Shown: positions 20 to 60,249, counted from the stretch's first letter. The stretch: DNA of 60,599 nucleotides from Hyphochytrium catenoides (GCA_900088475.1 FLMG01002427.1:1-60599); one strand, 5' to 3'. The notes: generated from the letters alone by a model not told the origin. A program made the numbers and translations.

Positions 20-3000
20 TCACCTCTTACTATTCTTCACAAGGTCAGAGAAGGTAACCACGCCTACCAGCCGCCCAAGCCGGGTCACATACACATGCGC
101 ACACCTGCCATCGAAGGGACAACAAGGAACAAGTTCAGTTAGCTAGCGGAGGACAGAAGTGAAAGAGAAGGACGTTGCTGATCGTAGAGAACGAGAGCAC
201 GGAACCAAGTGAGACTGATGGAACCAAGCCTCGAAGACTATAAAGGCGTGCATTAGGTAGAATGACGCAGGGAGAGAGATGATGATACGATGAAAGGAAG
301 ACAAGGCTCTCTCTCTCTCCTTTTCACTCTTGTCTCTCTTTCTCTCTCTCTCACTCACTCTTGTCTCTCTCTTTTCTTCCTCTTTCTCACCTAAGCATGT
401 CAAAGATAATGTGAATGTCTCTAATGGGCGTCTCTGGGGAAACAGTGAGAGCAATCGGTCCAAGCTTCTTCCTCTCAATAACAACCTAAAGTTCATCGGT
501 CAGCCAAAGTCGGGGATATGCGATTGGAATGGTGTTTCAAGAGAAGAGAGAGATATCACTGCCCCGATGAAGGGGTGAGGCTATCAGGGGAGACACGGGA
601 ACCACGAGCGTGGAGAGGGAACAGCACACACAGAGAGAGAGAGGGAGAGAGAGGGAGAAGGACGGTTGTTCTTACCTTTGACGTCTCGAGCAGCCTCTTC
701 TTCTCTGGATGCCAGTTAAGCGCGGTCACCTGCCCAACAAACCAAGAGAATGAGAAGAGGTAGCGAACAATAAAAGAGAAAAGGCTAACCAGCGATGAGC
801 GCGAGAGAGAGGCGTGCATGAAAAGGATGTGGAAGCTAAATGAGAGGATGAGACAAGAGAAAAGAGAGAGAGAGAGAGAGTGTACTCTTACTCGTAGGTT
901 CTCTTCCTCCCAGTCTCTCTGTTCAAAAGTGACATCATTAATGTTCTTGAACGATGCTGCCCGCGAATCGAGCTGCATCTTCATCTGGGCGGCCAACAAA
1001 CTACCACGGCCTATGGTTGTCGAGTTCTGGCCAGACAGAGAGAGAACGAGAGAGCAAAGAGAGAAGGACAGGAAAGAGGTGCAGGGGGAGTTAGCGGGAG
1101 AGACAGAGAGGGAGAAAGGCCAAGAAAAGAAGGATAAACTATAAGCGCAAAGCTCATAGCAGAGAGCTTTGGAAGTGGAGCTGAATGGGAGAGAAGATGG
1201 GAGAGCGAGGAAATACGCAGCAGCAAACATAGAGATGAAGAGAAAGAAATATATGCGGCAGCTGGGAAATGGAAAGGGGCGCCTCCTTACAATGGACGAG
1301 TAGTCGAAGTCTATCAGTGTGGAGCTATCGCCCAGATCACTCTCTAGACCAGATAACGAGTGGTGCTTGTAGAACTCACTGGCAAATGGAAGGGAGATCG
1401 TCAGAAGTAAAAAAGTTCATGGAGAGGCAAGAGAGAGACAGAGAGAGAGCGCGAGGTCGGGCGGTAACTTAGCTGCCTCTCTCTACTTGACTGCCCTACT
1501 TTCCAGGTTGTATTGCCATCAACTTTTGAGGTGGCCTCGTCTACTAACGAGTACATGCTACACTCTCACTTGTGCCCCTATAGCCTCATGTCCTGTCTTG
1601 CTTGATACCTCTCTCTCTTACCAAGCTCCCGCTTAACGCTTGCTTTTTTTAGGTCTCTGTCTGTTCCACCCGTAGCCTCCCTCTCACTTCTTTTCTTCAT
1701 GGCGTTCATCTACTTCACAGCATCACATTATCTCCTCGGATGCTTTCTCAGTCAAACCGCCTTTCTACTTACGCAACTATCTTGACAATGGTCTTCTTGC
1801 TAACGATCCCTAGCAGAATGGGGTCGTCCCTCTCGCTCACGACTGGGACAGTCCTCAACTGACATGTCCGCGCCACCACAAGAAGCTCTAGGATGGCCGG
1901 CCGCTCAGAGACCTTCACCACTTCTTCCTCCATAATTTCTGACGCCTTGAGGTCTTTCTCGAAGACCTAGACAGAGGGGGAAAAACGCGAAGGAAGAGAG
2001 AGAAAGAAAGAGGCAGAGATAGAGAGACAGAGAGAGAGACAGAGAGAGAGAGTGGTCAATCATACGACAGGGTCAGAATTACGATAAGGAACATTTGCGC
2101 ACCTCAAGGGGAAGGTAAGGCAGGTTGTTAACTAGGAGAAGCGAGTCGTAGATGCTGCGGCTAAGCAGATTTCCTACCCCGTACGCGGTCAGCACTGCCA
2201 GTAGCACTGCGGTGAGGGAAGCAAAAGAGTGTTGAAAAGTCAGGTCAAATGCGTCGAAACGGGAAGAGAGCGTGGCCCTAGAAAAGAGACAGAGTATAAG
2301 GAAACCGCAAGGTTGCAAGGCTCTACCATGTTAGAGGGCTAAGAGCCGAATCCAAAGGAGCGGACAGAAGCACAAAAAAATGCAGTGGCCGACTTGATGG
2401 CTAGCAGTGTGTCATTGTCTCAAAACGAGAAAGAGTTCTTCTACGGCTTTTGCTCTCTCCTCAACAGCAATCAGGTTCGCTCTTCTCAGCTCATGCCCAG
2501 CGCCATTCAACGGCTCTTACCTGACAGAGAGTTGTTGACTGTCCCTGTTATCTCTACGACAACTATCGCATTACTTATACTTCTAGTGACGCCCGTGGCC
2601 AGAGCTGCCCCGCCAACGAGCGCGTATACTACCGGGTCCGCATCCAGAGATGGCACCGCGCTCTTGAGCCCTTGGCCCAATAACCGCCCTAGAACAGTGC
2701 CTAAATAAACAGGGAAGAGAGAAGCGAATGAGATCAAAGATCGACGCTACGTAAGGCTTGGAAAGAACGCACGACGTCGACTTCTGCCACATAGCCTGCC
2801 TTCTTTGCCTTTATGGCACATTGTCAATACTGAGGAGCCTCACTCTACCTGCTACAAAGCCAGGCAGCCAGACGCCAAAAGGGATTCTGAGCGTGAGACA
2901 GAGCGGCATAATAAAACATAGCGTGAGGCTTATCAGAGCTATCGCTAAATATTTGTTCATGCCGATGTCATAGTCAGGGATCTCCGCTGGATTTAGAGCA

Positions 3001-6000
3001 AGGTTGGAGAGAGGAACTAGGCCCTGCAAGCAAAGGTTGAGCAGCGATCATCGTCAGTTCAAACTCTGCCTCACACAGCGAGAAGGAGATAGAGAGAAAC
3101 ACAGAAGAGAGAGAGAGAGAAATGAGAGACGAAAGAAGTCCGTGATAGAGTGACAAAGGAGCAAGAGATGCTTCGCATAAGGTGTTTAGATGCAGACTTT
3201 TGGCGAAAGGTCTGGGCGACATTAAAGACGTCACAACGGTGGAGAAGATGACTTTTACTAGTCAGCTTCGTCCGAGGCAAAGAAAGACCGAACTTATAAG
3301 ACAAAAGACAGGGAAAGGCAAGAAAAGCAAATCAACCTTCTCCCAGTAGGTAGAGAAGTAGAACTCTGCCGTACTGACTAGTACTGCCACGATAAGTGGA
3401 TCTATATAGAGGACGAAGCGTTGCCACAGCCGACCTCCTTTCGCTACCGCCCTACGCCACCGAACGGCGAACTCTGTGAGACGGACTATACCCGCACCCA
3501 CAACGCCCTACAGGTGAGGTTAGAAGGCAAGCCGAGAATAGAGGAAGGAGAGAGGAAAGCGATGAGGGCACCATTGAAGAAGGGAGGAGGGACAAGTCTT
3601 AAGCAAAACCTAAGAAAGGAGCAAGACGGGACTAGGGTGTCAAAAAGGAAGGGAAAGAAAGGACACTAGAGACATTCGTGGGAGGCCTACCAAGACAGCG
3701 GCAAGAAGAGTATAAATTAGAAAATTGATTGGACGCCCCAGAGGTGTCCGGAAGTCAAAAATCTCCTGGGTTGAAGTGAGGACAAAATCCTGCAGTAGAA
3801 GGTCAGTCCTGGGTCTCCGTCATTCACCGCGTTTTCTCTAACTATGGACTTCTCCCTTCCTAATCCCTTCATATGCTCAATCTTCTCAGTCATATGCTCT
3901 ATCTTCTCAGTAAATTCCCAGGCCCCGGACGAAGCAGAGAAGGTGGCGGTCGGACCGAGTGTTGATAAGCCAGGACTGTCATGCTCTCTACGACGTACCT
4001 AAAGAAATTGATCCGCCTCTAGACCATATATCTCACTCTGAGCACTACCTTCGCCACCTTGACCCCAACCCTCGCCACAGATTGCATAGCTCCTCTCTTC
4101 CCCTTTTACCCTCTTCGTCTTCTAGGTTCCTTCCATCGCTTCTATCTCTATTATCTTCAGAAACGGGTACTTACTCTGTACTGGGGCGTTCTGTCCTGGC
4201 CGGTGATTTCCCAATAAATAATGAGGTAAACGCTGAGAACAGCTGCCATGGAGCCCACAAAGCCCTTCCAATAGTTCGCCAATAGATNNNNNNNNNNNNN
4301 NNNNNNNNNNNNNNNNNNNNNNNNNNNNNNNNNNNNNNNNNNCCGGACGCGAAAGACGTTGAAATGGCAAAGAGCGGCACCAAGGAACAGGCAGCAGTTT
4401 ATGCAAGATGATGCTCGATGATCCCCGAGCAGAAAAGATGAGAAAGTCGAGAGCGAAGGAATGCGGGCGACAGTAACCCACCGACAGCGGTTGCCGCCTC
4501 TATGACTGCTAATCTACTAGACTTGTTGCCATCGCCAAGCCAAGGAATCTTGAAGAGTATCTCAGCAATCATTGCACTGAAAGAAGGAACAAAAAGTAAG
4601 AGAGTTACGTTTTTGAACAGGCCCGTCCGTCCAGTCATTCCTTCACTATACCTTATATGTGCGGATGGGCCCTCTCTTCCGATGGGAATCCCTGACCCTG
4701 CAACAAGTATAATCCCTAGTGTCTGAAGAGATATCACGGTTGAGCTTTGATAAACCGGAGTCTGACTTGTCGAGAGCGCAGAGAGAGTTCACAGAGCGAA
4801 TAGATGGACGACAGACCAACCACAGCGTGCTCCAAAGGCCAGAGGTAAAGCTACGAAGATAATCGGACTGGACCTTAACAACTAGGGTCCTAAAGCCTAG
4901 ATATCCTGGGATATCGACTCCCGCGAGGACTGTCTTTAGCTGCGGGATTCCTGAGCCTGCAACAAGCGTAATGTCCCGCATCGAGAAGATCCTTTTAGTA
5001 CGTGAAGGGATGACGGAACAGGCAGAAAGAAGGGAAGCAGACTAGCACGGTGGCAGAAGAGCTGGAGACTGTGAATGGGTCAGTTGACGGCAAGCTAAAG
5101 GCTAGAGAGTAGGAATATGTATATCGAAGAAAAAAGACAAAGACTAGGGAGATCTATGCAGCGACCTGATGCGAAGGGCGCAAGGTGTATGCAGAAGAGG
5201 ACTCCTAGCTCCAAGCTGGCAGCGGTGAAGACAGTGTACAGCAGCCACCGGAGTGCACTGTTGCTTGTCGCGTTATTGATAGCTTCGCGCACACTGTACA
5301 TCTGGTGAATGGCTCTACAAGTCGCGTCGGCAGTAATAATGGAAAGGAGAGTGACAAAGGAATGGCAGGTAAGAGGAAGCGAGGTATCAGTGCATTGTGA
5401 CCGCATTGTATGAGGACAAAAGGAAGGATGAAGGGCAAGGGCCCTGAAGATAAAAGGAGAGGAAGAAGAAAGTGGTCAAACGTAGGAGGCGAAAAGAGAA
5501 CAAAGAGAGAGAGAACCTCACCGCGATATGCCATAGATGAGAGACCCTGCCAGGATTCCATTCAAAAGAATGATGACGACAAAGCGTACGTTTGCCCTCA
5601 CCACGGGAGGGACGACGCCTTGGCTGCTATAGGAGTAGTCTCCTCTGGAGGATGAGCGCACATAGTCTAAGGTTGTGTCGTGCGTATAGGACGGTGGCAT
5701 GAGATCTCCGATGGAAAAGTGACGGGCGTTGACATTGGCGCCTGCATTCATGCAATAGAGTAGAGGCGCGGAGAGACGTATCGCCACGTTCCGCAAAGAG
5801 AGTGGGAGAGGGAACGACGAAGAGAGGGGGGAAGGAAACGAGAGACGGGGAAAAGGAGAGAGGGAAAGAAGGAGAGAGAGAGAGAGAGGTGAGGTGAGAT
5901 GAGATGAGAGAGAGTCAGAAATAGACCAGAGGACATCAAAAGCTCCTTGAGAGAGAGCACTAGCAGAGTTAATTAACGAAAGAAGAGCTCCGAGTATAAG

Positions 6001-6535
6001 AGAAAGAGAGAAGACGTTAGAAATCCTCCAAAAGGACTCTGTTTGAGGTGGACAGAGAGAAGCCCTGATATTAGGCCATGGGAAGCTAAGGAAGCGGTAA
6101 GATGTGCGGCACCAGGCAAGGGACCTTGAAAGGATGAAAGAAGCACAGGAACAGTGATAGACAACAGGTAAGAGAGAACGCATGGACAGCACAGACAGCA
6201 AAAGGAGGATGAGGTTCAGAGTGAGACGAAGAGAGTCCAAGAGAAAGAAGAGTATGTGAGGGTGAGAGAGAGATGCAGCAGCATGCCAATAGCTTACGAA
6301 TTTGGGCGGCAAGGTGTCCTCCGCCACTTTTCCGCCGCAGCGGTCGCACGTGGTCGGCTCCTTCTTCCAAGTAGCCAGTTTTGGCTTCCTCGTTCTCCCA
6401 GCTCTTGGTCAGTGAAGCCATGAATTCATCCAGAGCAACCTCTGGCGAGGTTCTCTCTGTCGATGGAGATGCGCTCTCTTCGTACTGAAAGCTGAAGACG
6501 CCATTCAGATTCGGTCTATCTTGTCTCTCACTCAT
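20..6535 (-). CDS. CLC-family chloride channel/transporter with C-terminal CBS domains (multi-exon)
   Basis: Exon translations contain CLC signatures: GSGIPQLKTVLAG (~4960-4920), GSGIPIGREGPSAHI (~4700-4655), IPFGVWLPGFVAG, YALVGGAALATGVTRSISNAIVVVEITG and SIYDSLLLVNNLPYLP. CBS pieces are TVSPETPIRDIHIIFDMLR and CAHVYVTRLGRLVGVVTFSDL, with stop TGA at 22-20. The start ATG at 6535 (MSERQDRP) is tentative. One exon is interrupted by the N gap 4288-4342. Confidence 0.93.
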
Positions 6536-7113
6536 TTTCCTCTCTCTTTCCTTGTCTGGCAATGGTCATACGTCTTCCTAGACGTGCCGAGGACCTTTTG
6601 CTTCGTTGTTAACCAGGCCCGCCATCAAGAGAGGAGAAGGAAGAACTAGAGACACTCTTTCCCTCGTCCTTTCAGTGTCTCTCTCTCTCCTCCCTCTCTT
6701 TCTCTTCTTCCTTGGTCTTTATCCTTTTCCTCTTTCCTCTTCCATTCCTGGCAGTCGGGCTTTAGAAAAGAGAAGAAGATATCTATGAAAGAAAGAGAGA
6801 GAGCAGAAGGGAGGTCGAGGACCGCAGTGGAAGCGAAGTCGTCCTCCTGATTGAGGTAGGTAAGCTTTATAGATATGTAAAGAATCAACGCAAAAGGTAG
6901 GACAGGGAGAGAGTGAAAGAAGAGGAGAGAGGAGAGGCGCAGAGAGAAAGAGTGAGAGGTTTCCGGCGGCAGTTGCTGCTACTTCCTTCTGCCTCTGATA
7001 CCGTAGCTTCCCGCACCATCGCCATCAGATGGGACAAGGAATGTGAATGCAATCAGTGTGATGGATGATGGGGAACAGACAGATGAGAACACTGGGAAAC
7101 GAAAAGACAGAGT

Positions 7114-7156
<43 letters not shown>

Positions 7157-7445
7157 NNNNNNNNNNNNNNNNNNNNNNNNNNNNNNNNNNNNNAGGTAGA
7201 GAGAGAGAGAGAGAGAGAGAGAACTTTATCCTTGATACTTTCCCTTCAGGTTGACCAATGCAGTAATAATACTAAGAGTAACCAGTTGCCCTCCAGCCCA
7301 TTACCTCCGGCAATCTTGTAATAATATGCAGCTGTAGATTACTGGGCTTCAGTAATCAGATGCATCCGTTTTGCTCCTCCCTCCCTATCTCTTCTCCCTC
7401 TCTCTTCCTCTTCCTCTCTCTCTCTTTGTCTCTCTCCTCTCTCTC

Positions 7446-8355: not shown

Positions 8356-10854
8356 TTACATTAGTAAGCTCTTAGGCACGTATCGGGGTAAAAGGTCCTC
8401 TTCCTCCAAAAAGTGCAGAGGAAAGGTGACGATATGTCCTTGGACTGTGGAAAGCCTCGACAAAGTTCCATAGGCTGTCCCAGCTCTCTCTCTCCCCGCC
8501 GGAGGTTCCTCCTTCATTAGGTCGGAGGCAGGCGACGGTGTTTGTTCCCCTTCTCTCTCTTCTCCTATCCCTTCCGCAGCCAGCATTTGTCCTAGATCCC
8601 GAGCTCGCATAGACTGGGAAGCGTGGGGAAGGGACCGATACTGGACAGGATTGAAATAAAAAGAGTTAGAACCAAAGGAACGAGAAGAGGCAAGCCTGGA
8701 AAGAATCAAGGTATACGAGCAAACGATCAAGAAAACATCTCAAGGCAATCATCTACCAAGGGGAGATGAGGTGCAGTGCATGTCCACGGCAGAGCTAGAG
8801 GGAGGGACAGAGAGAGAGAGAGAGTAAAAAACGTTGTTCTTGGGCAGGCAAGGCACGGACTCGCATACCGAAGCACTCTGCATCCTCCTCATAGCAAACG
8901 ACCCAGGAAAGGCGTTTCTGGATGCAGTCAAACTTCTTAACCTCTTAACTCTCCGGCCGCTATTGTCTTGGGGCGAACCTTCATCTGGTGACTCCTGGCT
9001 AGGCTTGGACTGACAGTGAGGGACTCTGTCTTCTTCCCTTTCTGCTTCTCTTCCTCCTTCCCTTCTACCTAACCATTCTGGACTCGATGTCTCCTCCCGC
9101 AGCCAGCTTGTTAGCTTCGGAAGCAAGCGAGAGGAAAGTGTGCCATCGGAATCTTCGTCTTCTTCCTCTCTCGCTCTAAGGACGAGCGGGGAGTACGTGA
9201 GCACAGGGTCTTCTCTCTCCTCAGCCTCTCTCTTGTGAATCCAGCGCCTCCTCCTTACGGCACTTCTCCATTTCTTCTGCAAGAACAAAAGTCGGAGCCT
9301 TTCCCTTCTGTTTCTCACGCCAAACTCGGCTTTCAGCTGCAAAAGATCTGCCTGATTGAACGCTTGGAAGTCGTTCGCATAGACCCAGCCCTCTCGGTCG
9401 TGGGGGAGGAGCCTGTCCACTTTTGAGGTGGGATGGAGGATCTATATGTGGCGGACCGGGGAAAGAAAGAGAAGGTTAATGCGGCAAAAGCGAGTTAAAG
9501 AGCATCCGCAGAGGTTTGGAGTACACTCTTACAAACAAGGTCAAGGATCAAAGCGGATGCAGAGATAGAGATGAGAATGCGGAGCCTGCAAAAGCTAACT
9601 ACACTAAGAATGGAAACTACCAAGCCCGATCTGAGAACACGCACAGAGGGAAGAGAGGTGCTGCACCTGATACTCCGTAAAGTCAAGACTGTTGGCATCG
9701 ATAGACCGCCCGGAAGGATCGGTTAAAGGAGTCGCGGTGGGCTTCCACGCCTTCTCCTGGGCCGACCACTCTTCGTTCTCAAAAAGCTCCAGCACATCTC
9801 CAGAGAGATCTGAAAGAGAGAAAGACAGTCCAACATAACGACATCAGACGAGACACACCCTGGACGATTAGCCAAAAGAGTGTCAAGCTGGTGCTCCCTA
9901 GGCTTACTCCCTCCTGTCGTTACTTTGATCTCTATCCTTTTCTTCCCCTATGCTTACCCGTGAACTTTTTCACTTGATCTGTGGGGAGGCAGCGGAAGAC
10001 TTGGTGGTAGATATCCGAGTTCATGTTTGCTATTTCGTGCAACTGAGTCCACGCTTGGGGAGAGGCCAAATCGTCCAGCTGGCGGAAGAGCGGGTTGTCC
10101 TTCAAGCACAGAAGCTCGTGTCAAAAAGATTGGCGAGCATGGGGCACATACCAGTAAGCACCCGCGAGAAGAGGCACGAAGCTCATAAACCCATGAAGGT
10201 GAACAATAGGAAGAGGAGACACACGCGTCGGAAAGCCGAAAAAAAGTTCTAAGTAGGCTCCGGGACGTGGGCAAGACGGACGACCGATCAGCTACCTGTT
10301 CCATCCCTAAATGCTCCGCAAGAAGCTGCATGCGCAGATCACGCGCAAGCTTTCCGACGGAGAAAGAAACACCACCAAGAACTCCATCCGAGAGCTCTAC
10401 ATCCTGCACAACGAGAGCTATTTCGCTATCCCTGTGACCGAAAAGCACAGCAGAAGAGGGAGCAGGTCCTTCAGATCACGCCAGAAACGCAGTGACGTCG
10501 GAGAAGAAGCAACTACTAGCAAGTTTCCATGGAGAAGTTATTCAGAAGAGCAGGAAGAGAGTGATACTCTGGGCAGGTAAAGACAGCGAGAAGAAAGAAG
10601 TTCTTTTAACGGGTGAAGAAGAGTAACAATGTACCTGTCTCCAAGTAGACTTCTGTCGTTGATGTTCGCTGAGCCGATGATGACCGTCCTATCGTCGACT
10701 ATCATAATCTTACTATGAATGTAGATCTTTCCACAAAGAAGCCAGAGTCAGTCTTTCAACTCCACTTCACTAGAGTCTTAGCTAGCAGGGGAGAAAGGTG
10801 TTCTCCCTATCCTACACCTCTCTTATCGTGAACGCAGCCATCACATATTTCGAC

Positions 10855-10894
<40 letters not shown>

Positions 10895-13800
10895 CGTTCA
10901 TCTTCCCCACTCTCGCTCTTGGCCTTTCTCTCTTGCTCTTCGGGATCTATTCGATCTTCTCTCCGGGAAAGAGAGAAGCTAGAGTTACCTGTTCCGTGGC
11001 GGTATAGCCAGCAGGCAGACTTCCATAGTTCCTGAGGCCAAAGAAGGCGATATACTCCGTGGGATCAATGTTATTCTTCTCCAAGAAGCGATAGAGCGAG
11101 TGCTCTCCCCGCGTTATCGTTTGGTACTAGGACCCAAACAGTAAAAAGACAATAGCAAATACACACGATAGAGGAGAAGCAGCCCGTTTGTGAGTGTCGA
11201 AGCGTACGGTCTCTCCTTTCCTCTAGGCTTATGGCTCCTTATATATGCTGACGGTTCGGCCGCTCTTCCTCCTTAAAAAATCATGCTCCTTGTACCATCC
11301 TCACTACCGTTCCCTCCTCTCTCTCTATCTGTCCCTTGTTTGCCCGAGGTGCAGCTCAATTTACCTGCCAGTACATTACTCCTTGGAGCGACGTCGCCGC
11401 TTTCGATCCCACTTCGCCCTCAAATCCGGGCATCAACGGAAGGAATATGAAGACTCGGAACTCCTTTCCCTCCTCATGTGCCTAAGGTGCAGAAAAAAAG
11501 GCTAGCTTCAGAACCACTCTGTTGGTACCTAGGACGCGGTCAATGAAGGAGGCAGAAGCTGGGGGTACAATTTGCGCGAGTGAGACAAGAGAGCTTTTTC
11601 CAAACAAGAACGACAATCGAAGACGGTGTCCCTGGTAGGTCCTTGTCGCGCTGCAAGATGAGACAAACTTGAAGAGAAAGAACAAAAGTGACAGGAGAAA
11701 GAGCAGATCGGGTTGCTCTTCTAGTTAATCAGCTCGAGGAGGTGAAGAAGGAGGGAGGAAGCCGCAGGAGCATCGTGGTGTGCTCACCCTGACTATTCTA
11801 TTTGCCAGAGCTTGGAGGACCCTGTTCTGAATGTTGCTCTCGCCCTCCAGGCCCGACACAAAGAACTGGTTCTCTATGTAAATGTAGTGTTCTGCTCTTT
11901 CTATTTCCTCCATGTACGCACTCTGGATGCTGCTCTCTGTGGGAACTCCCCCGGACCAGAGAGAGACAGAGCGGACTACCTGCACCTGGCACCGGATCCT
12001 GCCATCACAAGCTACAGGAGCAGGAGAGCATTGCGGGCCATGGCATACAGTCTCGGTTTCGCCTTCGAGAGTCTGCGGCTGGCTAGTGAGAGGAGGACTG
12101 TCTAAGAAATCTACTTTGGCAGCTGGCCCTTCCACTTCTTTGTCAAGTGCCTCTGGGATATCAATTAGACGGGAAAGAGGAGGGGTTCCAGCGGAAGTGG
12201 AGGGCTGCGGAGTTGAGAAGCTGCTCTTTCCCTGTTGTTCCACGGTGCATACGGCCTCAGTCAGTTCTGAACGGTCTGCTGTCAGTTCTGAGGGGTCTGC
12301 TCGGGGAAGTAGAGCTATCTCGTATCTCTTCATTCTTCTTCTTCGACAGCATTGACAGCTGAAGATAAGGGACGGGTCAAGAGGCAAGAGAGAACCCGAC
12401 TGTTAGTGACGTTATGATAGACAAGATTTTGTAGAGGAACGAAGTGAGCGGGAGAGAGAGAAAGAGAGAGAATGGGGGTGGAGAGGAAAAAGAGAGAGTA
12501 CAAGGAGATAAGGAGGAGGCAACAGGAGAACAGGACGAAGAACGTAAGGAAAGCAAGGTAGGGCCTGACAGAGATTTATAATGATCGCCAAAGGATCAGG
12601 TTCAAGTCTGATCTTCAGTGAGAAAAGTGAGCATGGAGAAGAAGAAAATATGCATTGTCAGCAGTGAAATGAGAGCAGAGCGATAAGACTGACCATCCAA
12701 AGCGCAGCCTGCTTCTTTTCTTATAAAGAACATAGTTCCATCTTTCTATGAAGTGCCGCGCCACATCCCTCGCCCCTGCTCCCCGCATTGAACAATGGAC
12801 ATCATGCCAGGGAAGTCGTGGCACTTCTTCTCTATCTATCATGTCTTCGTATGGTCGCTCCACGGAAACGAAGTCCTTCACCCTTTATAAGGAGAGAATG
12901 CAAGATAAGCCGAGTGTGTCCAAAGGCAAGAAAGAACGAAGACAAAAGAGGGAGATGTGGAAAGAGAAGAAGTAAAAAAGAAGGGTTGCGCTGTCTGTAG
13001 ACAACGCTGACATTCAATCAACTCAGAGTGCTGTCTATTTCCTGTTCTGTCCTAGCTCTCTTTACCTGGGGTTTGAATAGTCCTTTCCAGGCCAGATGTA
13101 TGGCTTCTGATAGTCCTGCAGTTGATGCTTCGCATTGTCAAAGCGTCCAAAGGCAGGGTCCAGGCCTCCGACAAAGGCGATAGATTGGTCCATGACTAAG
13201 ATCTTTTCATGATGAGACCAAAAGCCCAAATCCTGCATCTGGAAGTCTGGGTCTCTCTTAACCAAAATGTTCGGGTGGGAGAGGAGGCGGCGCTTTGCAA
13301 AAAGGCTGCGGTAAGAACAGTGGGCAGAACACGAACGTTAAGAGGGTAAGCGTTAACGAGCGGAAAGAGAGATCTGGCATAGGGATTCGATTCCATCTCT
13401 CAAGGGCCTTTCAGTGAAAATCATGGCACTCAGAAGGAGCGTGTAAGTTGGCAGCAAGAAGTTCCCCAAAGAAAGGTCGCAAGAAACACAAGCGGCATGG
13501 AATGTTCTCTTTTGGGTGACTGGACAAGGAGCAGTTCCCATACAGTAGCGGTCGGGAGCAGGAGGTCATAAATGAGGTAAGAGTGGACGGATAGCTTGGC
13601 AGCTGTCACAACTGGAGTGACAAGCGCAACCTACCTTGCGTTCGTCAAGAAGGCTTTCGGCTCTTTATAGATCAGCACATACACCTTAACTCCTGCTTCA
13701 GCCCTTTCCCTCAGCACCTCATCCAGTCTACTCGAAGGATGGAGGTCAGCAGGCCTTAACAGATATAAATCAGGGCAGAGCCACCAAGCGGTAAGCATTA

Positions 13801-30277: not shown

Positions 30278-31222
30278 TTAGTCAGAAAGCCGACATGTCT
30301 CTCGACCAAGCCTCTCGATGTGTCTATCCCTTCTGTTCAGTTGAAAGCGAACCTCCGCCTTTATCGCGGGAAAAATTCTTTTGAAGGCTTTCTCTGAGAG
30401 AGGTGTCCCAAGCCGGGCACTTTTATGAAATGTACGGCTTGTGGCTAGTATTGCAGGGGTTAGGCCCTTGTCGGCCTGCTGACACATAGTAAGCAGAGCA
30501 GCTCGCCGTTGGGCTCTTCTCTCTTCAATAGGAAGGTTCATGTACGCCGCTTTGCTGTTCTCTTCTCTCGCCTGCTTAGCCCGCTTGGCCTCCGCCCTCG
30601 TCTTCGCATCGCGTCTCTTCCGGGCTGACTTTTCCTTCGCTTTCGTCAATAGACTCCTCAAAGCAGGAACCTCTCTCCTCTGCAAAACGTCCTTGATAAG
30701 GTATTGTCTCGTCACCATGCTTTCACTTGGTCTGGGGGTGCTAAAGGTGAGGACCTCTACTTCTCTAAAGGGCAGACCGTGCAGTACGCTCTTCAGCTCC
30801 GAAGCCTCATCTCGTAGATAATGCTCCCGCAAGAGGATTTCAGTGACTGTCCGTTCTCTGAGGCATTCCCAGCAGCTTCTGAGAGAGAAGGCCCAGTAGA
30901 ATATCCGCACCGTGCCAGAGCCACAGAACATGCAGCCCACAGCGCCCATGAGGCTTAGTCTTAATTGAGGAGGCGGTCGGGCGCTCTCGCATTCTGCCAG
31001 CTGCATGCGCCATAGGTCTTTACCAGGGCCATAACCGTCTGCGGATCGCACTTTATAGATCTCCCAGGCACTGTCCCAGATCTCCGGATGATGCTTCAGA
31101 GCTTCGTGAAGCTTTTTGCAGACGCAGCTGAGTTTATTAAAAATCAAAGGATCCTCCCCGGCGTAGGTTATGCAGTTGACGAGGATCATTTTCAGGATCT
31201 CCGCTGGGAACTCAGAGAACAT
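30278..31222 (-). CDS. Intronless F-box protein with CxxC...CxxC motif and basic helical C-terminus (314 aa)
   Basis: N-terminus FSEFPAEILKMIL...LSCVCKKLHEAL...EIW fits the F-box consensus. It also contains GCMFCG...YWAFSLRSCWECL. The 945-nt ORF is uninterrupted and has non-repetitive composition. Confidence 0.8.
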   Translation of the reverse strand: MFSEFPAEILKMILVNCITYAGEDPLIFNKLSCVCKKLHEALKHHPEIWDSAWEIYKVRSADGYGPGKDLWRMQLAECESARPPPQLRLSLMGAVGCMFCGSGTVRIFYWAFSLRSCWECLRERTVTEILLREHYLRDEASELKSVLHGLPFREVEVLTFSTPRPSESMVTRQYLIKDVLQRREVPALRSLLTKAKEKSARKRRDAKTRAEAKRAKQAREENSKAAYMNLPIEERRAQRRAALLTMCQQADKGLTPAILATSRTFHKSARLGTPLSEKAFKRIFPAIKAEVRFQLNRRDRHIERLGRETCRLSD

Positions 31223-33877: not shown

Positions 33878-37380
<3,503 letters not shown>

Positions 37381-41914: not shown

Positions 41915-44653
41915 CTAGAATAGGAGGAGACAGAGAATGACGAAAATGCCTAGCACTAGTAACAGCCGCGAGAGCAGTGCTTCTTGCGTCTCCGGGGGGT
42001 GGACGCCTCCCTGTGCACCTACCAGGCAGAGCACGGAGAGTAAATTTACTGGCCGACTCTTGAAAAAGTCATAGCCACTAGAAAGCGTAGACGGCCAAAG
42101 AAAAGAAGGTCGGGGACGAGAAGCAAGAGAGCAAGAGAGGATAAGTAAAGGGAAACAACAGTTACTTGTTCTCGGGAAGAAGAGAAATCGTAGAGAGAGA
42201 CAGCATGCAGCTTTACCTTGCCCTCCAACATGCATTGAACCACTGGAAAAGGATTGCTGCAAGGAGAGCCGGCAGAAGAAGAGGGATTTTGCATCAGCAA
42301 CGAATTGCTACGTTACAAGCAATATAACGAACAGATCAAAGCAGCAGAGAAGAGTCTGGCGACTTGAGAGACAACGACGAACAGTCAGGAGTAGCAGAAG
42401 TCAGCGCCAATGTGAAGGGATACAGCACAAGATAGTCAGACAGAGAAAGCAACCGTCTGACAAGAGGCCAAGCAAGTGAGAGGAATCCCAGAGCAAAAGG
42501 GAGAGAGAGGAAAGATCTCTCGAGGCAACGGGAACGCTGAGAGGAAGAAAGTGAGGCAAGAGGATAGAAGGAGAGAGAGAGAAAAGCCAAACGACCGAGA
42601 TGAAAAAGGAAAGATGGTTGAACCGAGAGAGAGGATTATGAACGGAGAGTTCACAAGCAGTAGGAACAAGAAAGCGCCCTTACAAATTGCAGCCCAAATA
42701 GAGAAGGAAAGAAACCGAAGCCAGTAGAAGAGAATCCGAAAAGAGGATTCGCGCCTCCTTGAAATGCCCCGAAGCCGGTCTGCCAGGGAACAATAAGCAT
42801 ATCAAAAGGTCAGGCAGAGAGTAGGCGAGGCACACGAGCGAAGCAGACGAAGAGAGACCAAGGCAAATAGGAGAGCCAGAGGAGAGAGGAACCTGCCGGG
42901 CGGCACCAAAGGGCGATGCAGAGCAGCTAATAGAGCAAGCAACCCCGCAAGACACATACAAACCAAATAAGGAACAACGTGTAAATACACAGGAAGAAGG
43001 AGCGAGCGAGCGAGCGAGAGAGAGAGAGAGACAGAGAGAGGGAGAGTAGACGGATGCGTATCTACCGGCGCAGCTTGCCGTCGCGGTTCAGGGCGTTGTC
43101 CTGCTGGTCTATTGGGGATATCCTCTCGATCTGTCTTGCTCCTGCAAGTATAATAGAGTGATTCTTCTGCAGCTATGTCGTTGACCTTCTCGTTCGCGCC
43201 TTGGTCGCTTTTCGTCGCCTAGTGTCTCTCTCGCCGTGTCAAGCAGTCTATCCGCACGAAACCTCTTCTCTCCTTCCCCTTTTCTGCCCTCTCTCTCTCT
43301 CCTCTCTTCTGCCCCTCCCCTTCCGTCTTCTCTTTTTCCTTCCAGTCTTCCTTTCTCTGTTCTCCTTTCCATTCTTACCGAGGATCCACGTGCTCCGCTC
43401 CTCTGCCGTACACAGGGATCACGTTCTCCCTCGTCACTCCCGCCTTACAGACAGGACATATTGTATGTCCGGTCTGGAGCCACTGATGACAGAGAGAGAG
43501 AGAGAAGGAGAGAGCAGCCCAACGAGATGAAAGGAACGATTAGTTATGTGACAGCTACAGAATCTCATCCTAGGAGAGGAGGACAGAGACGAGGGCAGAG
43601 AAATGCAAGAGTGTGGGAAGAGAGGAAGAAGGATAGGGAGACTGAGCATGCCTGATGGCTACACGAAGACCAAGAGATGAGAGAGATAGAGCTTCGAGTA
43701 GGAGCAATTACCCGGTAGAGGCATGGCCAACTGCGCTCATATATTTCCCAACCACAGAGGCGACCGAGAAAGAGGGAGACCGACCAAGAGAGGCAGTTGG
43801 GAGAGAGAGCAAGGGAGAGAGAATATGGAAGAAAGAAGAACATAGGGAAAAGAAAGGAGCGAGGTTGGGAGTACGGAGAAAGGGAAAGGAGACGGTACAT
43901 AGAGACAAAAAGAGAAAGAGACACATACCGAACGAGAGAGGCAGAGGCAACACGAGGTTAGACTCCAGTCAAACATCACAGAGCAAACCAGAAGCAGCAT
44001 CACAAACAGTTCAAAGAGAAAAACAGTCAGCAAAGGAGGAGGCTCCAGGAAACGAGGAAGAAAGGCGCAGGACATATGAGATCTATAGTATGACCATGCT
44101 AAGAAGCAGGATATGGGACAGAAAATCGTGGTCAAGGGCCAAGAGAGAGTCTGATGCTGAAGAGGAAACCCAATGAAGAGAGAGCAGGCAGGAGGAGAAG
44201 CGTCAGAAGTCGAAACGAGAGCGTAGTCGAGAGAGAAGGAAAGGGCTAGGGGCAGAGAGAGGAAAGATAAACAGCATAGCAGAGTTCTACGGAAGAACAG
44301 AGAGAGAGAAAGGTAGAAAGAAAAGAAAGAGAGAGAGAGGGAGGGAGAGGAAAGGAGAGAGTGAGAGAAAGAGAGAGAGCGACCAAACGAAACATAGCGT
44401 TGCTTGACCAACGTCTCTCTCACCAATAAAGGTGACCACAAAGAGTGATCACCGGATCTCGCACTTGCTCTAGGCAGATGTTGCACTCGAAGAAAGAGTC
44501 AGAGTCCGTGTCTCCATTTCTCCCTCGCTGGCCCCCAGCTGTCTCTGTCTTCTTCTCTTCCTCTCCCTTCTCGCCAGATCCTCTCTCTTCTCCGCTGGTG
44601 ATTTGGGTGCGGTGCCTAACACCGCTGCTGCTGCTGTCCACGGGCTCAGCCAT
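41915..44653 (-). CDS. RNF5/RNF185/RMA1-type tail-anchored C3HC4 RING E3 ubiquitin ligase
   Basis: Spliced [33 protein letters not shown]...[23 protein letters not shown], then [24 protein letters not shown] and a C-terminal [22 protein letters not shown]. Confidence 0.92.
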
Positions 44654-45292: not shown

Positions 45293-48200
45293 CCTCTCTC
45301 TCTCTTCTCTCTCTTTTCTCTCTCTCTCTTCTTTCNNNNNNNNNNNNNNNNNNNNNNNNNNNNNNNNNNNNNNNNNNNNNNNNNNTCTCTCTCTCTTTTG
45401 TCTGCCGCTCTTCCCTTTGTCCTTTCTTATTACGCTTTCATGTGTCTGTTCCTCTCTGTCTCTCTCCTCGCGGAAAAAAGCTCTTCTCTTACAACCTTCC
45501 TAAGATATTCACTAACTAACGATAACCTCCATATTTGGAGTCTAATAAGCGGTAGCTAAATATCCTCCCTAGTCCCCAAGGGCCATGGCCCGTATTTACG
45601 TCCTTCTTTCGTCGATATATAGTCCAACAAATCTCCTTGAGAGGCAGCAGCCGTCCGCAGCCTGCGCCCGATCTTCAGAAATGAAAGCGCCGCCACGGAC
45701 GAGAAGCTTTCTTTCTTCTTCTGCATCGACGGCCGCGCCTGCGCCGCCCAGGATTCCGGGAGAAGCCTCCGTCTCCCATTCCCAGCCCGTGCATAAGCCG
45801 GAGATACAGCCAATACGTCGTCGCAATGAACCAGACCACCAGCAGCTCCACCAGCTTTCAGCAATGAGATCGGCTCTACTTCCAGAGGAAAAGGCGAGCC
45901 ATCCACGGAGGATCAGAGCCTTGATTGTCATCACGCACACCCTTTTTTCTAGATGAAAGAAAGTCGTGTCGTCCATCCACTTCTTCTCTTATCTAGAGGG
46001 GCATTGTCAGGTGATGAGAATCACGGCTCTGATCTTATGGCGCGACCCTGATGAAGTTCTTTAGCGTAAAGATGGCTGCTGTGATGAAAGCTGGCGTTTG
46101 GTTTGTCGCAGCAAAATATTGGCTGTTGGCTTGTATCGGGTGCTGGGCGGGAACGGTTGGAGTCGACCTTCCTCTCTCCCGACCTCTCTCCCTCTCACAC
46201 ACACTTTCTCTCTCTCTGCTCTCTCTTTTCTGTCCGTGTGCCCGCCTTTCTCTATCTTCTCCCCTTGTCCCTCTCCTCCAACATCGTTGCTCTTGCTATA
46301 ACTGTCTTGTCCTGTCCTGCTGCTTCCATCTTCCCCATTCCTTCTGTTTATAAAGATAGAGAAAGGGTCAGTGGTGCCGTTGCAGGTGAGCGAGGAGACC
46401 GGACAGCAAGCAGCCATCATGTTTCTGCCACCAGCGCTGGAAGATATGATGAGGTCGAAGAGAAAAGGGCGGAGAGACAAACGAGTGATGGATGCTGGGT
46501 CCCAAGCAGATGAGTGGGGTGTGAGACGGAGTTGAAGAGAGTGAGGAAGAGAAACGTCCTCTGCCTCTGAAAAAGACTTAAGAGAGCATGTCGTCCGGTC
46601 CTTTCTGGTCTCACTCTCAACTCTCAATCGATCTGTCTTTCAGCAGGAGCTTCTTCTTCTTGAACTCTATCTTCCTCCGAGGAGAGGCGACAGAGAGGAA
46701 TGAGAGCGGGTCTTCTCTCCCTTTCATTCTTCGCGCATCTCTTTGCGGACTTCTTCCAAGAAACTTGCACAACCACTTACTCCCTTCTCCTTACTGCTTC
46801 TTCCGCCATACATCATGAGCCTCTCTTCCTTAAATTCTCTTTCTCTCTAATCCACTTCCGCCTGCTTTTCTTTCTCACGCTCCTTTGGCTGCTTCATGCC
46901 CTCTATGCCCTGGCCACTTTCCACAGCGGCCACACACCTCCATCCCCTACAGGCAATGGTGCAGGATCCCGAGGACAGCTGCAAAAGATAATAGTTGGGT
47001 TCAACTCCCGTGTGCTGGTTGTCAAGGATGATTCATACATCTAAAGCATGCAAGCTTGTGACCCAGAAAGTCGACCTCACTGCACTTATCGTTCCCTCTG
47101 CTGGCGCCATTGTAGCTTGGACTGAGCGAGCTTCATGGCCGCCTACTGGCGGAGTGTGTCGAGCGCTGAACCCGTCCCAGGATAGCAACCTGTCCCAAAC
47201 AAACAGAGCACAAACTGATGGATAATGCCCTGAGCCCCACATCACTCGTCCTTAGAATAGCTGTTACTCTTCTCTTGGCCGATCATTTTCTAAGGGCTAC
47301 GCCTATCAAGCAGTGGTGCAGCTCAGGGCATAATCCATCAGCTGATAGCTCCAGTGATGTCCAGTTAGGATGATAATAGCTTTCTATTCATTTACACCAT
47401 CAGCACCACCATCAGCATATGACCAGTGGCGGTAGTAGAGCTACTCCTGTGGGAGTGGGCTGGTGGCGCATCATCAGCTCATCACACCTGGGCTTATGTC
47501 CCGGAGACGGCCGATGGTACTATCGATAGGAGCTCTAGAGACTCTTATGAGGCTGCAGGATAGTATGCCGAGGTCGAAGCGCCCTCGTCCACTCGACCAC
47601 CATAGACCTGTCAAAGCCGCGAGGACATCAATCAGAAGGGAGGCGGCTTTACCTTGATCCTCTCTTAAGACTGATTGATCCCCCGCCATCACACAGTCAG
47701 TACCTCCAGCCATGGACTGAGGAGCTCCATCAATCATAATCACGAAAACGCCTTCCTGTCACCAGCTTCTCGCCCTGACCTTTTCTCATTATCCACCAGT
47801 TCATCGCGCTGCTACAAGTGTGTGGTCAACGAACCATCAGCTAACAGCTGGTCTCGTGGATGATTGCTGACTGCTAGCTGTGAATCTTGTTCGTGGTGGG
47901 GATGCGTCAAGCTATCGTGGATCTTAGTGGCTCAAAGACCGGCCAAGGAAAAGTCCAAAGCATGCGACATTCCTATCCAGTCATGCCGGCTCAGCGAAGA
48001 ACCTAACGTGCACAGCATACTCTACTGATAATTGGCAAAGTAGGGGCTTGCGAGAAGGCTTGTAGCTCGGAGGGCACCATTGTCCAAGCCAACAACCTCG
48101 GTAGTTCCACATAACCCTGCGGCGCTACTGTCCGTGAGACAGCTTCCAGCTTTGCCACCATCCAAAAAAACAAGCTTCATCAGATTTGGCCATTGACAAC

Positions 48201-58914: not shown

Positions 58915-60249
58915 GAGAGAGAGACACCGGGTGCTTTTATGTCGTAGTGTCAGAAGAAGAAGAACAGAGAGTTGACGATTGAGAGAAAAGCGCAACACCA
59001 ACATTCTCTCTGGGATGAAGGGCAGTCCGAAGCCATCCAAGACCACCGCGTTCTGCTTCTCCGCTGTGAATTCACGCTCAGCCATGATGGCGTTCGCCAA
59101 GAACTCGTCCTACGAAGAGATACAAACATATATTTTCATAAAGAGGAGCGTTGGAAGAGAGAGAGGAGAAAGAGAGAGACAGAGAGGGAAAGAAAGAGAG
59201 AGAGGGAGAGGGAGAGAGAAGAAGAGGGAGAAAGAAAGGGAGAGAAGGAAAGAAAGAGAAAAGAAGTAGGATGAGTGATAGTTTGAGAAGAGAGTGCACT
59301 TGTAGGGTTGAAAGCAACCAGCAGAGAGACAGACAAGAGAGAGAGGAGACAGCGTGCTTATAAGTAATGAAAGACTCCAGTCTGGCTCTTACAAGTGAGT
59401 TCGCCTCCAAAACTGACTCCAACGGACCGAGAGCATCTCCTCCATCGCGAGCTGAGACTAAAGAGCCGGCGCTGCTTGGAAAAGTAGGTAACGAGAGAAA
59501 AAGGAGTGCACACAACGCCGAGAGAGTGCGGGAGAGACGTTGCGTGGGAACATGAGACAAATAAAAGAGAGAAAGAGAGCGAGAGGCAGGAGGGAAATGG
59601 GAGAAAAGAGAGAGAGAGAGAAAGCGAAAGAGGTTAGGAAGAGAGCAAGGAATTAGGAAGAGAGAAAGAGAAAGGGAGTACAAAGGGAAGACAGGCAGGG
59701 AGGGAGGGATCAGATGAGAAAGGCTGCCGGGGAGCTGTTCATGAAAAGAGCAGGACAGAAGGGCTCCGAAGAGAGAAGAAAGCACCAACGCCGCTCGAGA
59801 GTGACTTGCCCGGCAGAGGCAACAGAAGTGAGAAGAAGGAAAGGGTGGGCTAAGCTTTCCTCACTTTCTCTCCCCCTTCCCTATCTCTCTCCCTCTTACT
59901 CTCTGTCTCTCCTCTCTTTGCTTTCTTCCGTTTCATCCTCTTCTGGTTCTCACACTCTCAATCTCTCGTTTCACTCTCGAAGCTCTATGTCTCTATCCCT
60001 CTTTCTTCTCTCTCTCGCTCCTTCTCTCTCTTTCCCTCCTTAACCTCCTCCAGTCTCTCAATATCCAAGACCGCCATTCACTCAAAGCCGCGGCCTAGTG
60101 TCGTCTTCCGTCTCCTCTTCCTCTTCTCCACGCTCCCTCAACCCTCTCTGTGACACTCACGTGGATCGCACTTTCTTCCCTGCGTTCGGGTTGGCGCGGC
60201 GCTGCAGAGCGCGGCCTAGATCGCTTCCTTTGTTGGTCTTGCGGGGCAT
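54767..60249 (-). CDS. LSG1: Large-subunit GTPase 1 (circularly permuted GTPase, 60S maturation)
   Basis: MPRKTNKGSDLGRAL start (ATG 60249). Motifs: LESVLEANSL-DEFLANA, LTVPRRPAWD, FLDWRRQLA, TPFEKNLEVWRQLWRVMERS..IVDARNPLFY, VNKADFL, GMVGFPNVGKSSLIN, STPGKTKHFQT, LCDCPGLVFPSF, PDESRAARIILKDFVDG. The last exons and the stop at 54767 are tentative. Confidence 0.95.

Follow-up and report, generated by a model that had tools for sequence, protein, structure and literature searches.

The window analysed here is a stretch of 60,599 nucleotides (nt) of the Hyphochytrium catenoides assembly (GCA_900088475.1, FLMG01002427.1:1-60599), whose minus strand carries, from 8356 to about 18500, a multi-exon gene for a phospholipase D (PLD). 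Near its C-terminus the predicted enzyme contains an insert of 302 residues, made up of a 117-residue DysF-like span followed by about 174 residues of low-complexity linker, and it is probable that the span, encoded by two exons, is a genuine though divergent module of the DysF type spliced into a PLD link. As read from the sequence, the insert expands a surface link that joins the last conserved helix of the enzyme (...VFRCLP...) to its C-terminal strand (GH.V.FPL.FL). The parts of the gene that encode the module and its immediate continuation are as follows.

9809-9667, minus strand: exon A, 47 codons plus 2 bases, the candidate N-terminal DysF-like half (LELFENEEW...TEYQ)
9666-9442, minus strand: intron of 225 nt dividing the DysF-like module, GT...AG, pyrimidine-rich, with an in-frame stop and a negative coding score in all frames
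9441-8869, minus strand: exon B, 191 codons, phase 0, lying within a 230-codon open stretch
9441-9214, minus strand: first 76 codons of exon B, the C-terminal DysF-like half, whose top match in the PDB is the TECPR1 N'DysF domain (8p5p_A)
9213-8869, minus strand: tail of exon B, an acidic, Ser/Arg-rich low-complexity linker of about 115 residues in the same open frame, with a coding score of about 0

Both peptides on which the sequence-only reading had built its case for a DysF domain were found where it had placed them, on the minus strand between the FRCLP segment and the PLD C-terminus, and their exons fit in frame. That reading had the module occupy 9225-9810; the peptides do lie there, but exon B runs on for about 115 residues past 9225.

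The likeness to DysF is clearest in exon B. A search of the PDB (177,635 distinct sequences) with its 76-residue piece placed the N'DysF domain of TECPR1, 8p5p_A, in first rank. The same chain was again first for a 31-residue sub-piece containing the GW.YA.DF region, at chain positions 75-89, and for a 25-residue sub-piece containing the KKW...VRRRRWI region, at chain positions 94-112. The two sub-pieces do not overlap and their matches are collinear on the 116-residue 8p5p chain; the selection of one and the same chain, in the right order, by two independent queries is, on these sequence comparisons, not a chance pattern. Both C-terminal motifs of DysF, GW.YA.DF and (K)W...VRRRRW(I)R, are contained in exon B, and its language-model neighbours in the Atlas are an oomycete cluster annotated as Pex24p and a cluster annotated as 'Peroxin/Ferlin domain', which, with scores of 0.83-0.85 (below 0.9), may be taken only as a lead. 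Judged by these sequence matches, the C-terminal half of the span appears convincingly DysF-like. The residues described as structural or lipid-binding in TECPR1 were mapped by eye from the published domain (PMC10476172; residue number = chain number + 57), with the following outcome.

Trp/Arg stacking residues: W138, R159, R161 and R167 kept, R165 replaced by His
Lipid-binding tip: D143, K152, K153 and the essential W154 kept, C157 replaced by Ala
N-terminal YENQRW motif, FENEEW here: W77 kept, R76 replaced by Glu

In exon A, FENEEW retains the aromatic, Glu, Asn and Trp positions of (Y/F)ENQRW with the Arg changed to Glu, and it is by FENEEW alone that the N-terminal half is recognised. The whole span, from LELFENEEW to WIHKRE, measures 117 residues against the 116 amino acids of the crystallised TECPR1 domain, and contains five Trp residues, whereas the remaining 424 positions of the model have four. 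Three DysF landmarks lie in the right order and at near-native spacing within this domain-sized span. When loose patterns for the N-terminal and the C-terminal half were run over 559 kb in six frames (the window together with 80 eukaryotic PLD loci), each occurred once, and it is in this gene that the two fall, ordered as in DysF on one strand and about 390 nt apart. The pairing of the two DysF-like patterns exceeds chance.

The gene that carries the module has all the features of PLD membership that were sought, namely both HxKxxxxD motifs, the 15-residue PLD motif, the C-terminal GH.V.FPL.FL and matches to PLD1 and PLD2 in the PDB. Its catalytic and C-terminal half was rebuilt by hand in eight exons, which comprise exons A and B together with the six that are set out here, followed by the open reading frame (ORF) holding the first HKD motif.

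11481-11365, minus strand: first PLD exon of the rebuilt part, hand-built model
11126-10989, minus strand: second PLD exon of the rebuilt part, hand-built model
10726-10635, minus strand: HKD2 exon, holding the second HKD motif together with a 10-residue motif, read in translation; retrieved 184 metagenomic PLD loci
10431-10296, minus strand: fourth PLD exon of the rebuilt part, hand-built model
10099-9958, minus strand: final conserved PLD exon ahead of the insert, ending in FRCLPTDQV, with a phase-1 donor; its top PDB matches are PLD2 (6ohm) and PLD1
8640-8356, minus strand: terminal exon, about 57 non-conserved residues followed by the conserved PLD C-terminus and the stop; matches PLD2 6ohm chain 601-627 at E=1.2e-4
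13337-13065, minus strand: ORF with the first HKD motif, HHEKILVMD; matches Pfam PLDc (PF00614) at E=3.8e-6, above the curated cut-off

All junctions of the eight-exon model are AG/GT (introns GT-AG), the introns of the rebuilt part measure 148-262 nt and the joined exons read without interruption through 541 codons to a TAA at 8356. No assembly gap falls within 8356-11481, Rfam gave no match over the region, tandem repeats there are trivial only, and no ORF beneath the exons on the opposite strand reaches 65 amino acids. The ORF with the first HKD motif shares 45-50% identity with environmental PLDs (tblastn), and for HKD2 with the catalytic half the identity to the nearest of them is 42-56%. 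A further 10-residue motif lies, like the first HKD motif, upstream of the rebuilt part. Upstream of HKD1, the ORFs encode a PH-like strand flanked by hydrophobic helices and further transmembrane-like stretches; Pfam searches of the upstream ORF fragments matched neither PX nor PH. On these features the gene would encode a eukaryotic HKD-type PLD with transmembrane helices upstream of its catalytic domain, to be called PXTM-like only.

The position and the size of the insert were established by comparison with other PLDs. PLD2 and PLD1 are the best PDB matches of both flanks, and since the FRCLP segment aligns to residues 554-577 of the human PLD2 chain 6ohm and the terminal segment to residues 601-627, a link of about 23 residues in PLD2 corresponds to 302 residues in this gene. 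From HKD2 to the terminal motif this gene counts 426 residues, against 156-173 (median 167) in 114 full-length PLDs, none of which contains Pfam PF06398; a search with the long ORF of locus L026, a moss PLD zeta, returned plant PLDs only. From the 184 metagenomic PLD loci retrieved with the HKD2 exon, 80 eukaryotic loci were examined. The terminal motif is recognisable in 47 of these, 410-650 nt from HKD2 in most, while 14 loci with no recognised terminal motif and two more, read by eye, have an ordinary short link wherever the C-terminus is readable. The short link is also found in the loci nearest to this gene at HKD2, namely L075 (56% identity), L077 (50%) and L013, which has a transmembrane helix. 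Alignments of environmental PLDs to the model end at about residue 204, right after FRCLP; an apparent alignment of locus L070 into the insert was rejected as a spurious tail alignment. An insert at this site was found in none of about 170 other PLDs surveyed, a survey outside which the oomycete PXTM-PLDs lie. A metagenome scan with the FRCLP exon gave no match, nor did a search for full-length relatives with the ORF that spans transmembrane stretches and the start of the catalytic domain.

Several side observations concern these environmental genes and the upstream part of the Hyphochytrium gene. The contig of L075 carries, at 899-7400, two tandem PLD genes whose HKD2 region comes nearer to that of this gene than any other (50-56% identity), both with ordinary short C-terminal links. 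Several environmental PLDs (L013, L016 and the L001 group) have one transmembrane-like helix about 170-200 residues before HKD1, and judging by such sequences PLDs that bear transmembrane helices may be more widespread than the oomycetes. In the window itself, long hydrophobic stretches lie on the minus strand at 13634-14374 and 15600-16600, immediately before the catalytic domain and on either side of the PH-like strand. The window contains five short runs of N (4288-4342, 7157-7193, 19173-19184, 33895-33985 and 45336-45385); that at 19173-19184 is situated in CT-rich low complexity upstream of the PX-like exons of the PLD and may affect the 5' gene model. The largest other ORFs of the window (5518-6327, 556-1230, 30278-31222, 43737-44486, 23797-24414 and 59078-59788) gave no Pfam match at E<=0.001.

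The assignment to DysF must be weighed against a series of observations that point the other way. The E-values of all PDB matches to 8p5p are individually weak (0.07-1), and among the residues mapped on TECPR1 R76 is changed to Glu and R165 to His. Exon A alone found no DysF match in the PDB or the Atlas, and the WxWxxxW ladder of TECPR1 (W116, W118, W122) has no clear counterpart in the loop, where, by eye, at most the Phe and Tyr of LDFTEYQ could take its place. Of the DysF hallmark that the sequence-only reading had recognised across both exons, the C-terminal half stands, matching TECPR1 8p5p at diagnostic residues, whereas exon A is left with no independent match and the ladder is not evident. 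The Pex24p-type affinity proposed by the same reading was not borne out at the level of the profile, Pfam PF06398 matching none of the separately searched exon pieces at a threshold as loose as E<=10. The spacing from ANDF to KKW is 30 residues here against 7 in TECPR1, an excess of about 23, and AlphaFold, run on the exon B half alone, returned nothing other than helices at low confidence (predicted local distance difference test score, pLDDT, of 63), which is uninformative. An exhaustive HMMER search for relatives of the C-terminal DysF piece against 1.84 billion representative proteins yielded two spurious repeat matches only, so conservation of the insert cannot be invoked; a word-indexed search (E<=10) and a scan of viral contigs likewise found no relatives of the insert piece. 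At the level of the transcript, no RNA sequencing run is listed for this stretch, and twelve in-frame, open acceptors exist by which the donor at 9958 could be joined directly to the region of the terminal exon.

Given these observations, it is possible that the exons are translated and that the span is a lineage-specific insert, basic, Trp-containing and partly helical, which shares only short motifs with DysF and which, if active at all, would act as an unspecific electrostatic membrane patch or as a disordered regulatory loop. This explanation would accommodate the lack of a profile match, the N-terminal half that finds no support, the missing Trp ladder, the extra segment of about 23 residues, the helices modelled for the C-terminal half alone and the want of any homologue of the insert among the 1.84 billion representatives, and it gains from a further match, between the RRRRWI stretch and an unrelated mitoribosomal protein. 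It is nevertheless rather unlikely: three landmarks would have to have come together in the right order, at near-native spacing and within a span the size of the domain, two independent pieces rank the same DysF chain first among 177,635 sequences, and nine mapped structural or lipid-binding residues are kept (W77, W138, D143, K152, K153, W154, R159, R161 and R167).

The extra stretch between ANDF and KKW is probably an Arg-rich, helical segment. The Arg-rich segment at 9360-9288 on the minus strand, within residues 23-69 or so of the exon B piece, gave weak PDB matches (E 0.09-0.9) to the N-terminal helix of uS4/S9, a resemblance that is probably compositional, between amphipathic basic helices. 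A 42-nt in-frame sequence in exon B, GTGAGA...TTGCAG (9318-9277, minus strand), was considered as a mini-intron and rejected as unlikely, the introns of this gene measuring 148 nt or more; its splicing would remove 14 residues of the extra loop and no DysF motif.

A second alternative is that the gene model is at fault, in that exon A, exon B or both are absent from the mature mRNA and the DysF-like frame is non-coding or confined to a minor isoform. The lack of a listed RNA run and the short link of all other surveyed PLDs would suit such an artefact, as would the twelve bypass acceptors and the donor of exon A, GTGCAG, which is the only donor of the gene that does not begin with GTA. The bypass acceptors are, however, poor in pyrimidine (0.05-0.65 of the tract) against 0.70-0.80 for exon A (80%), exon B and the terminal exon, the acceptors of the model as a whole covering 0.55-0.80. 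Exon A enters in phase 1, which is the phase of the donor at 9958, and leaves in phase 0, the phase of exon B and of the terminal exon; it therefore brings the phase-1 donor exactly into register with the conserved C-terminus. The coding score in frame is +0.17 bits per codon for exon A and +0.23 for the DysF part of exon B, and is negative off frame and in every intron, as computed with a codon model trained on the small set of homology-supported exons and with those same introns as its background; the two exon parts score as coding in this frame only. A 230-codon open stretch that holds a domain-like set of motifs would, moreover, be improbable in an intron. An alternative pairing of the donor GGTAGT for exon A with an acceptor at 9419 was also considered; it would keep all DysF motifs, and its extension scores as non-coding. 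The splicing proposed here is deduced from frame, splice sites and coding potential, and this indirect evidence favours the inclusion of exons A and B in the mRNA, which makes an artefact improbable. That the gene is instead a decaying pseudogene whose C-terminal region has picked up unrelated sequence is very improbable: its one point is that no ortholog or transcript was found, whereas both HKD motifs, the 15-residue PLD motif and the C-terminal motif are intact and neither frameshift nor stop interrupts the eight exons.

If the span is a divergent DysF module, its part in the enzyme may be considered by analogy with the DysF domains whose ligands have been described. In the TECPR1 N'DysF domain (PDB 8P5P, Boyle et al. 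2023), the exposed W77 and W154 are inserted into the membrane and R76, K152, K153 and D143 bind sphingomyelin, and in TECPR1 as in ferlins the WxWxxxW ladder pins the long DysF loop (PMC10476172). The DysF domain of Pex30 floats with liposomes containing phosphatidic acid, and in simulations its hydrophobic residues insert while its arginines contact that lipid (PMC12101077); the binding of phosphatidic acid by Pex30, of which the sequence-only reading had made use, is thus on record. In the Hyphochytrium PLD, FENEEW and VRRRRWI would form the central strand pair of a DysF 'finger', the tip of which (the Trp of FENEEW, the Asp of ANDF and Lys-Lys-Trp) would dip into the bilayer beside the active site. 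A recruitment role is less likely because the PLD would already be anchored by its transmembrane helices, and a finger placed next to the C-terminal strand and held by a long, flexible linker would more likely be a sensor or an orienting device than a recruitment domain. Such a sensor could respond to a substrate-like lipid with a phosphocholine head group, on the model of TECPR1, or to the product, phosphatidic acid, on the model of Pex30, and would thereby set the orientation of the catalytic domain or gate it; a third option is that the linker of about 174 residues tethers the catalytic domain in trans to a second membrane. By analogy, the Trp/Asp/Lys-Lys-Trp tip seems to resemble a site for a zwitterionic phosphocholine head group no less than a site for phosphatidic acid, so the sensing of substrate would be as plausible as product feedback; a role of the insert in phosphatidic-acid feedback or at contact sites is speculation. 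The widest form of the proposal, in which a PLD has its own TECPR1-like finger gating catalysis by the lipid of the bilayer, as one case of a lineage-wide wiring of DysF onto membrane-lipid machinery with DysF as a general portable sensor, is conceivable and is put forward tentatively, with odds that lie clearly against it.

PLDs convert phosphocholine lipids to phosphatidic acid, phosphatidylcholine being the substrate, and their regulation runs through N-terminal lipid-binding domains of the PX, PH or C2 type. DysF domains were long without known function, and to our knowledge ligands have been published for two only, those of TECPR1 (sphingomyelin) and Pex30 (phosphatidic acid). If the proposed fusion is real, a lipid-binding module inside the last surface link of a catalytic domain would be a different regulatory layout, and the fusion of DysF to an enzyme that makes phosphatidic acid from a phosphocholine lipid would offer a natural, testable case for what DysF senses and could guide the engineering of lipid-gated PLDs. 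The weight of the finding is limited by the divergence of the module and by an expression that is predicted from the sequence. The literature searched holds no description of a PLD-DysF fusion and, as the sequence-only reading had supposed in setting it apart from canonical PLDs, no such architecture occurs in the PLDs surveyed. The architecture may be older and wider than this genome.

Among known systems the nearest is the N'DysF domain of TECPR1, with which the candidate module shares GW.YA.DF, KKW.S.VRRR(R/K)WI, nine equivalent residues and an overall length (117 against 116 residues). It differs in having Glu for R76, Ala for C157 and His for R165, in showing no evident WxWxxxW, and in spacing, the stretch ahead of KKW being longer by about 23 residues and the first loop shorter by about 9; its setting, too, is different, the module here lying inside the catalytic domain of an enzyme whereas that of TECPR1 belongs to an autophagy adaptor with tectonin repeats. 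With the Pex30/Pex24p DysF domains (PMC12101077, PMC12101078) the likeness lies in a candidate module on an integral membrane protein and in phosphatidic acid, the ligand of Pex30 and the product of PLD. PF06398 finds no match on the separate exons here, and Pex30 combines its DysF with a reticulon-like domain and lacks a catalytic one.

The oomycete PXTM-PLD, represented by P. infestans PITG_00284 (1807 amino acids; Meijer et al. 2011), has, before its catalytic domain, a PX domain, some five transmembrane helices and the remnant of a PH domain (PMC3056787). The gene described here resembles it in an intact HKD1 and HKD2, a motif of the IYIENQFF type and, upstream, a putative PH remnant and several predicted transmembrane helices; the two were compared by description only, and that description (PMC3056787) mentions neither a DysF domain nor a C-terminal insert. 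With the canonical PX/PH PLDs (human PLD1/PLD2, 6U8Z and 6OHM, and plant PLD zeta), this enzyme has the catalytic half in common, and the segments on either side of the insert can be aligned to PLD2; it is set apart from them by the length of what lies between: a link of about 23 residues and an HKD2-to-terminal distance of 156-173 in the canonical enzymes, against 302 and 426 residues respectively in that of Hyphochytrium.

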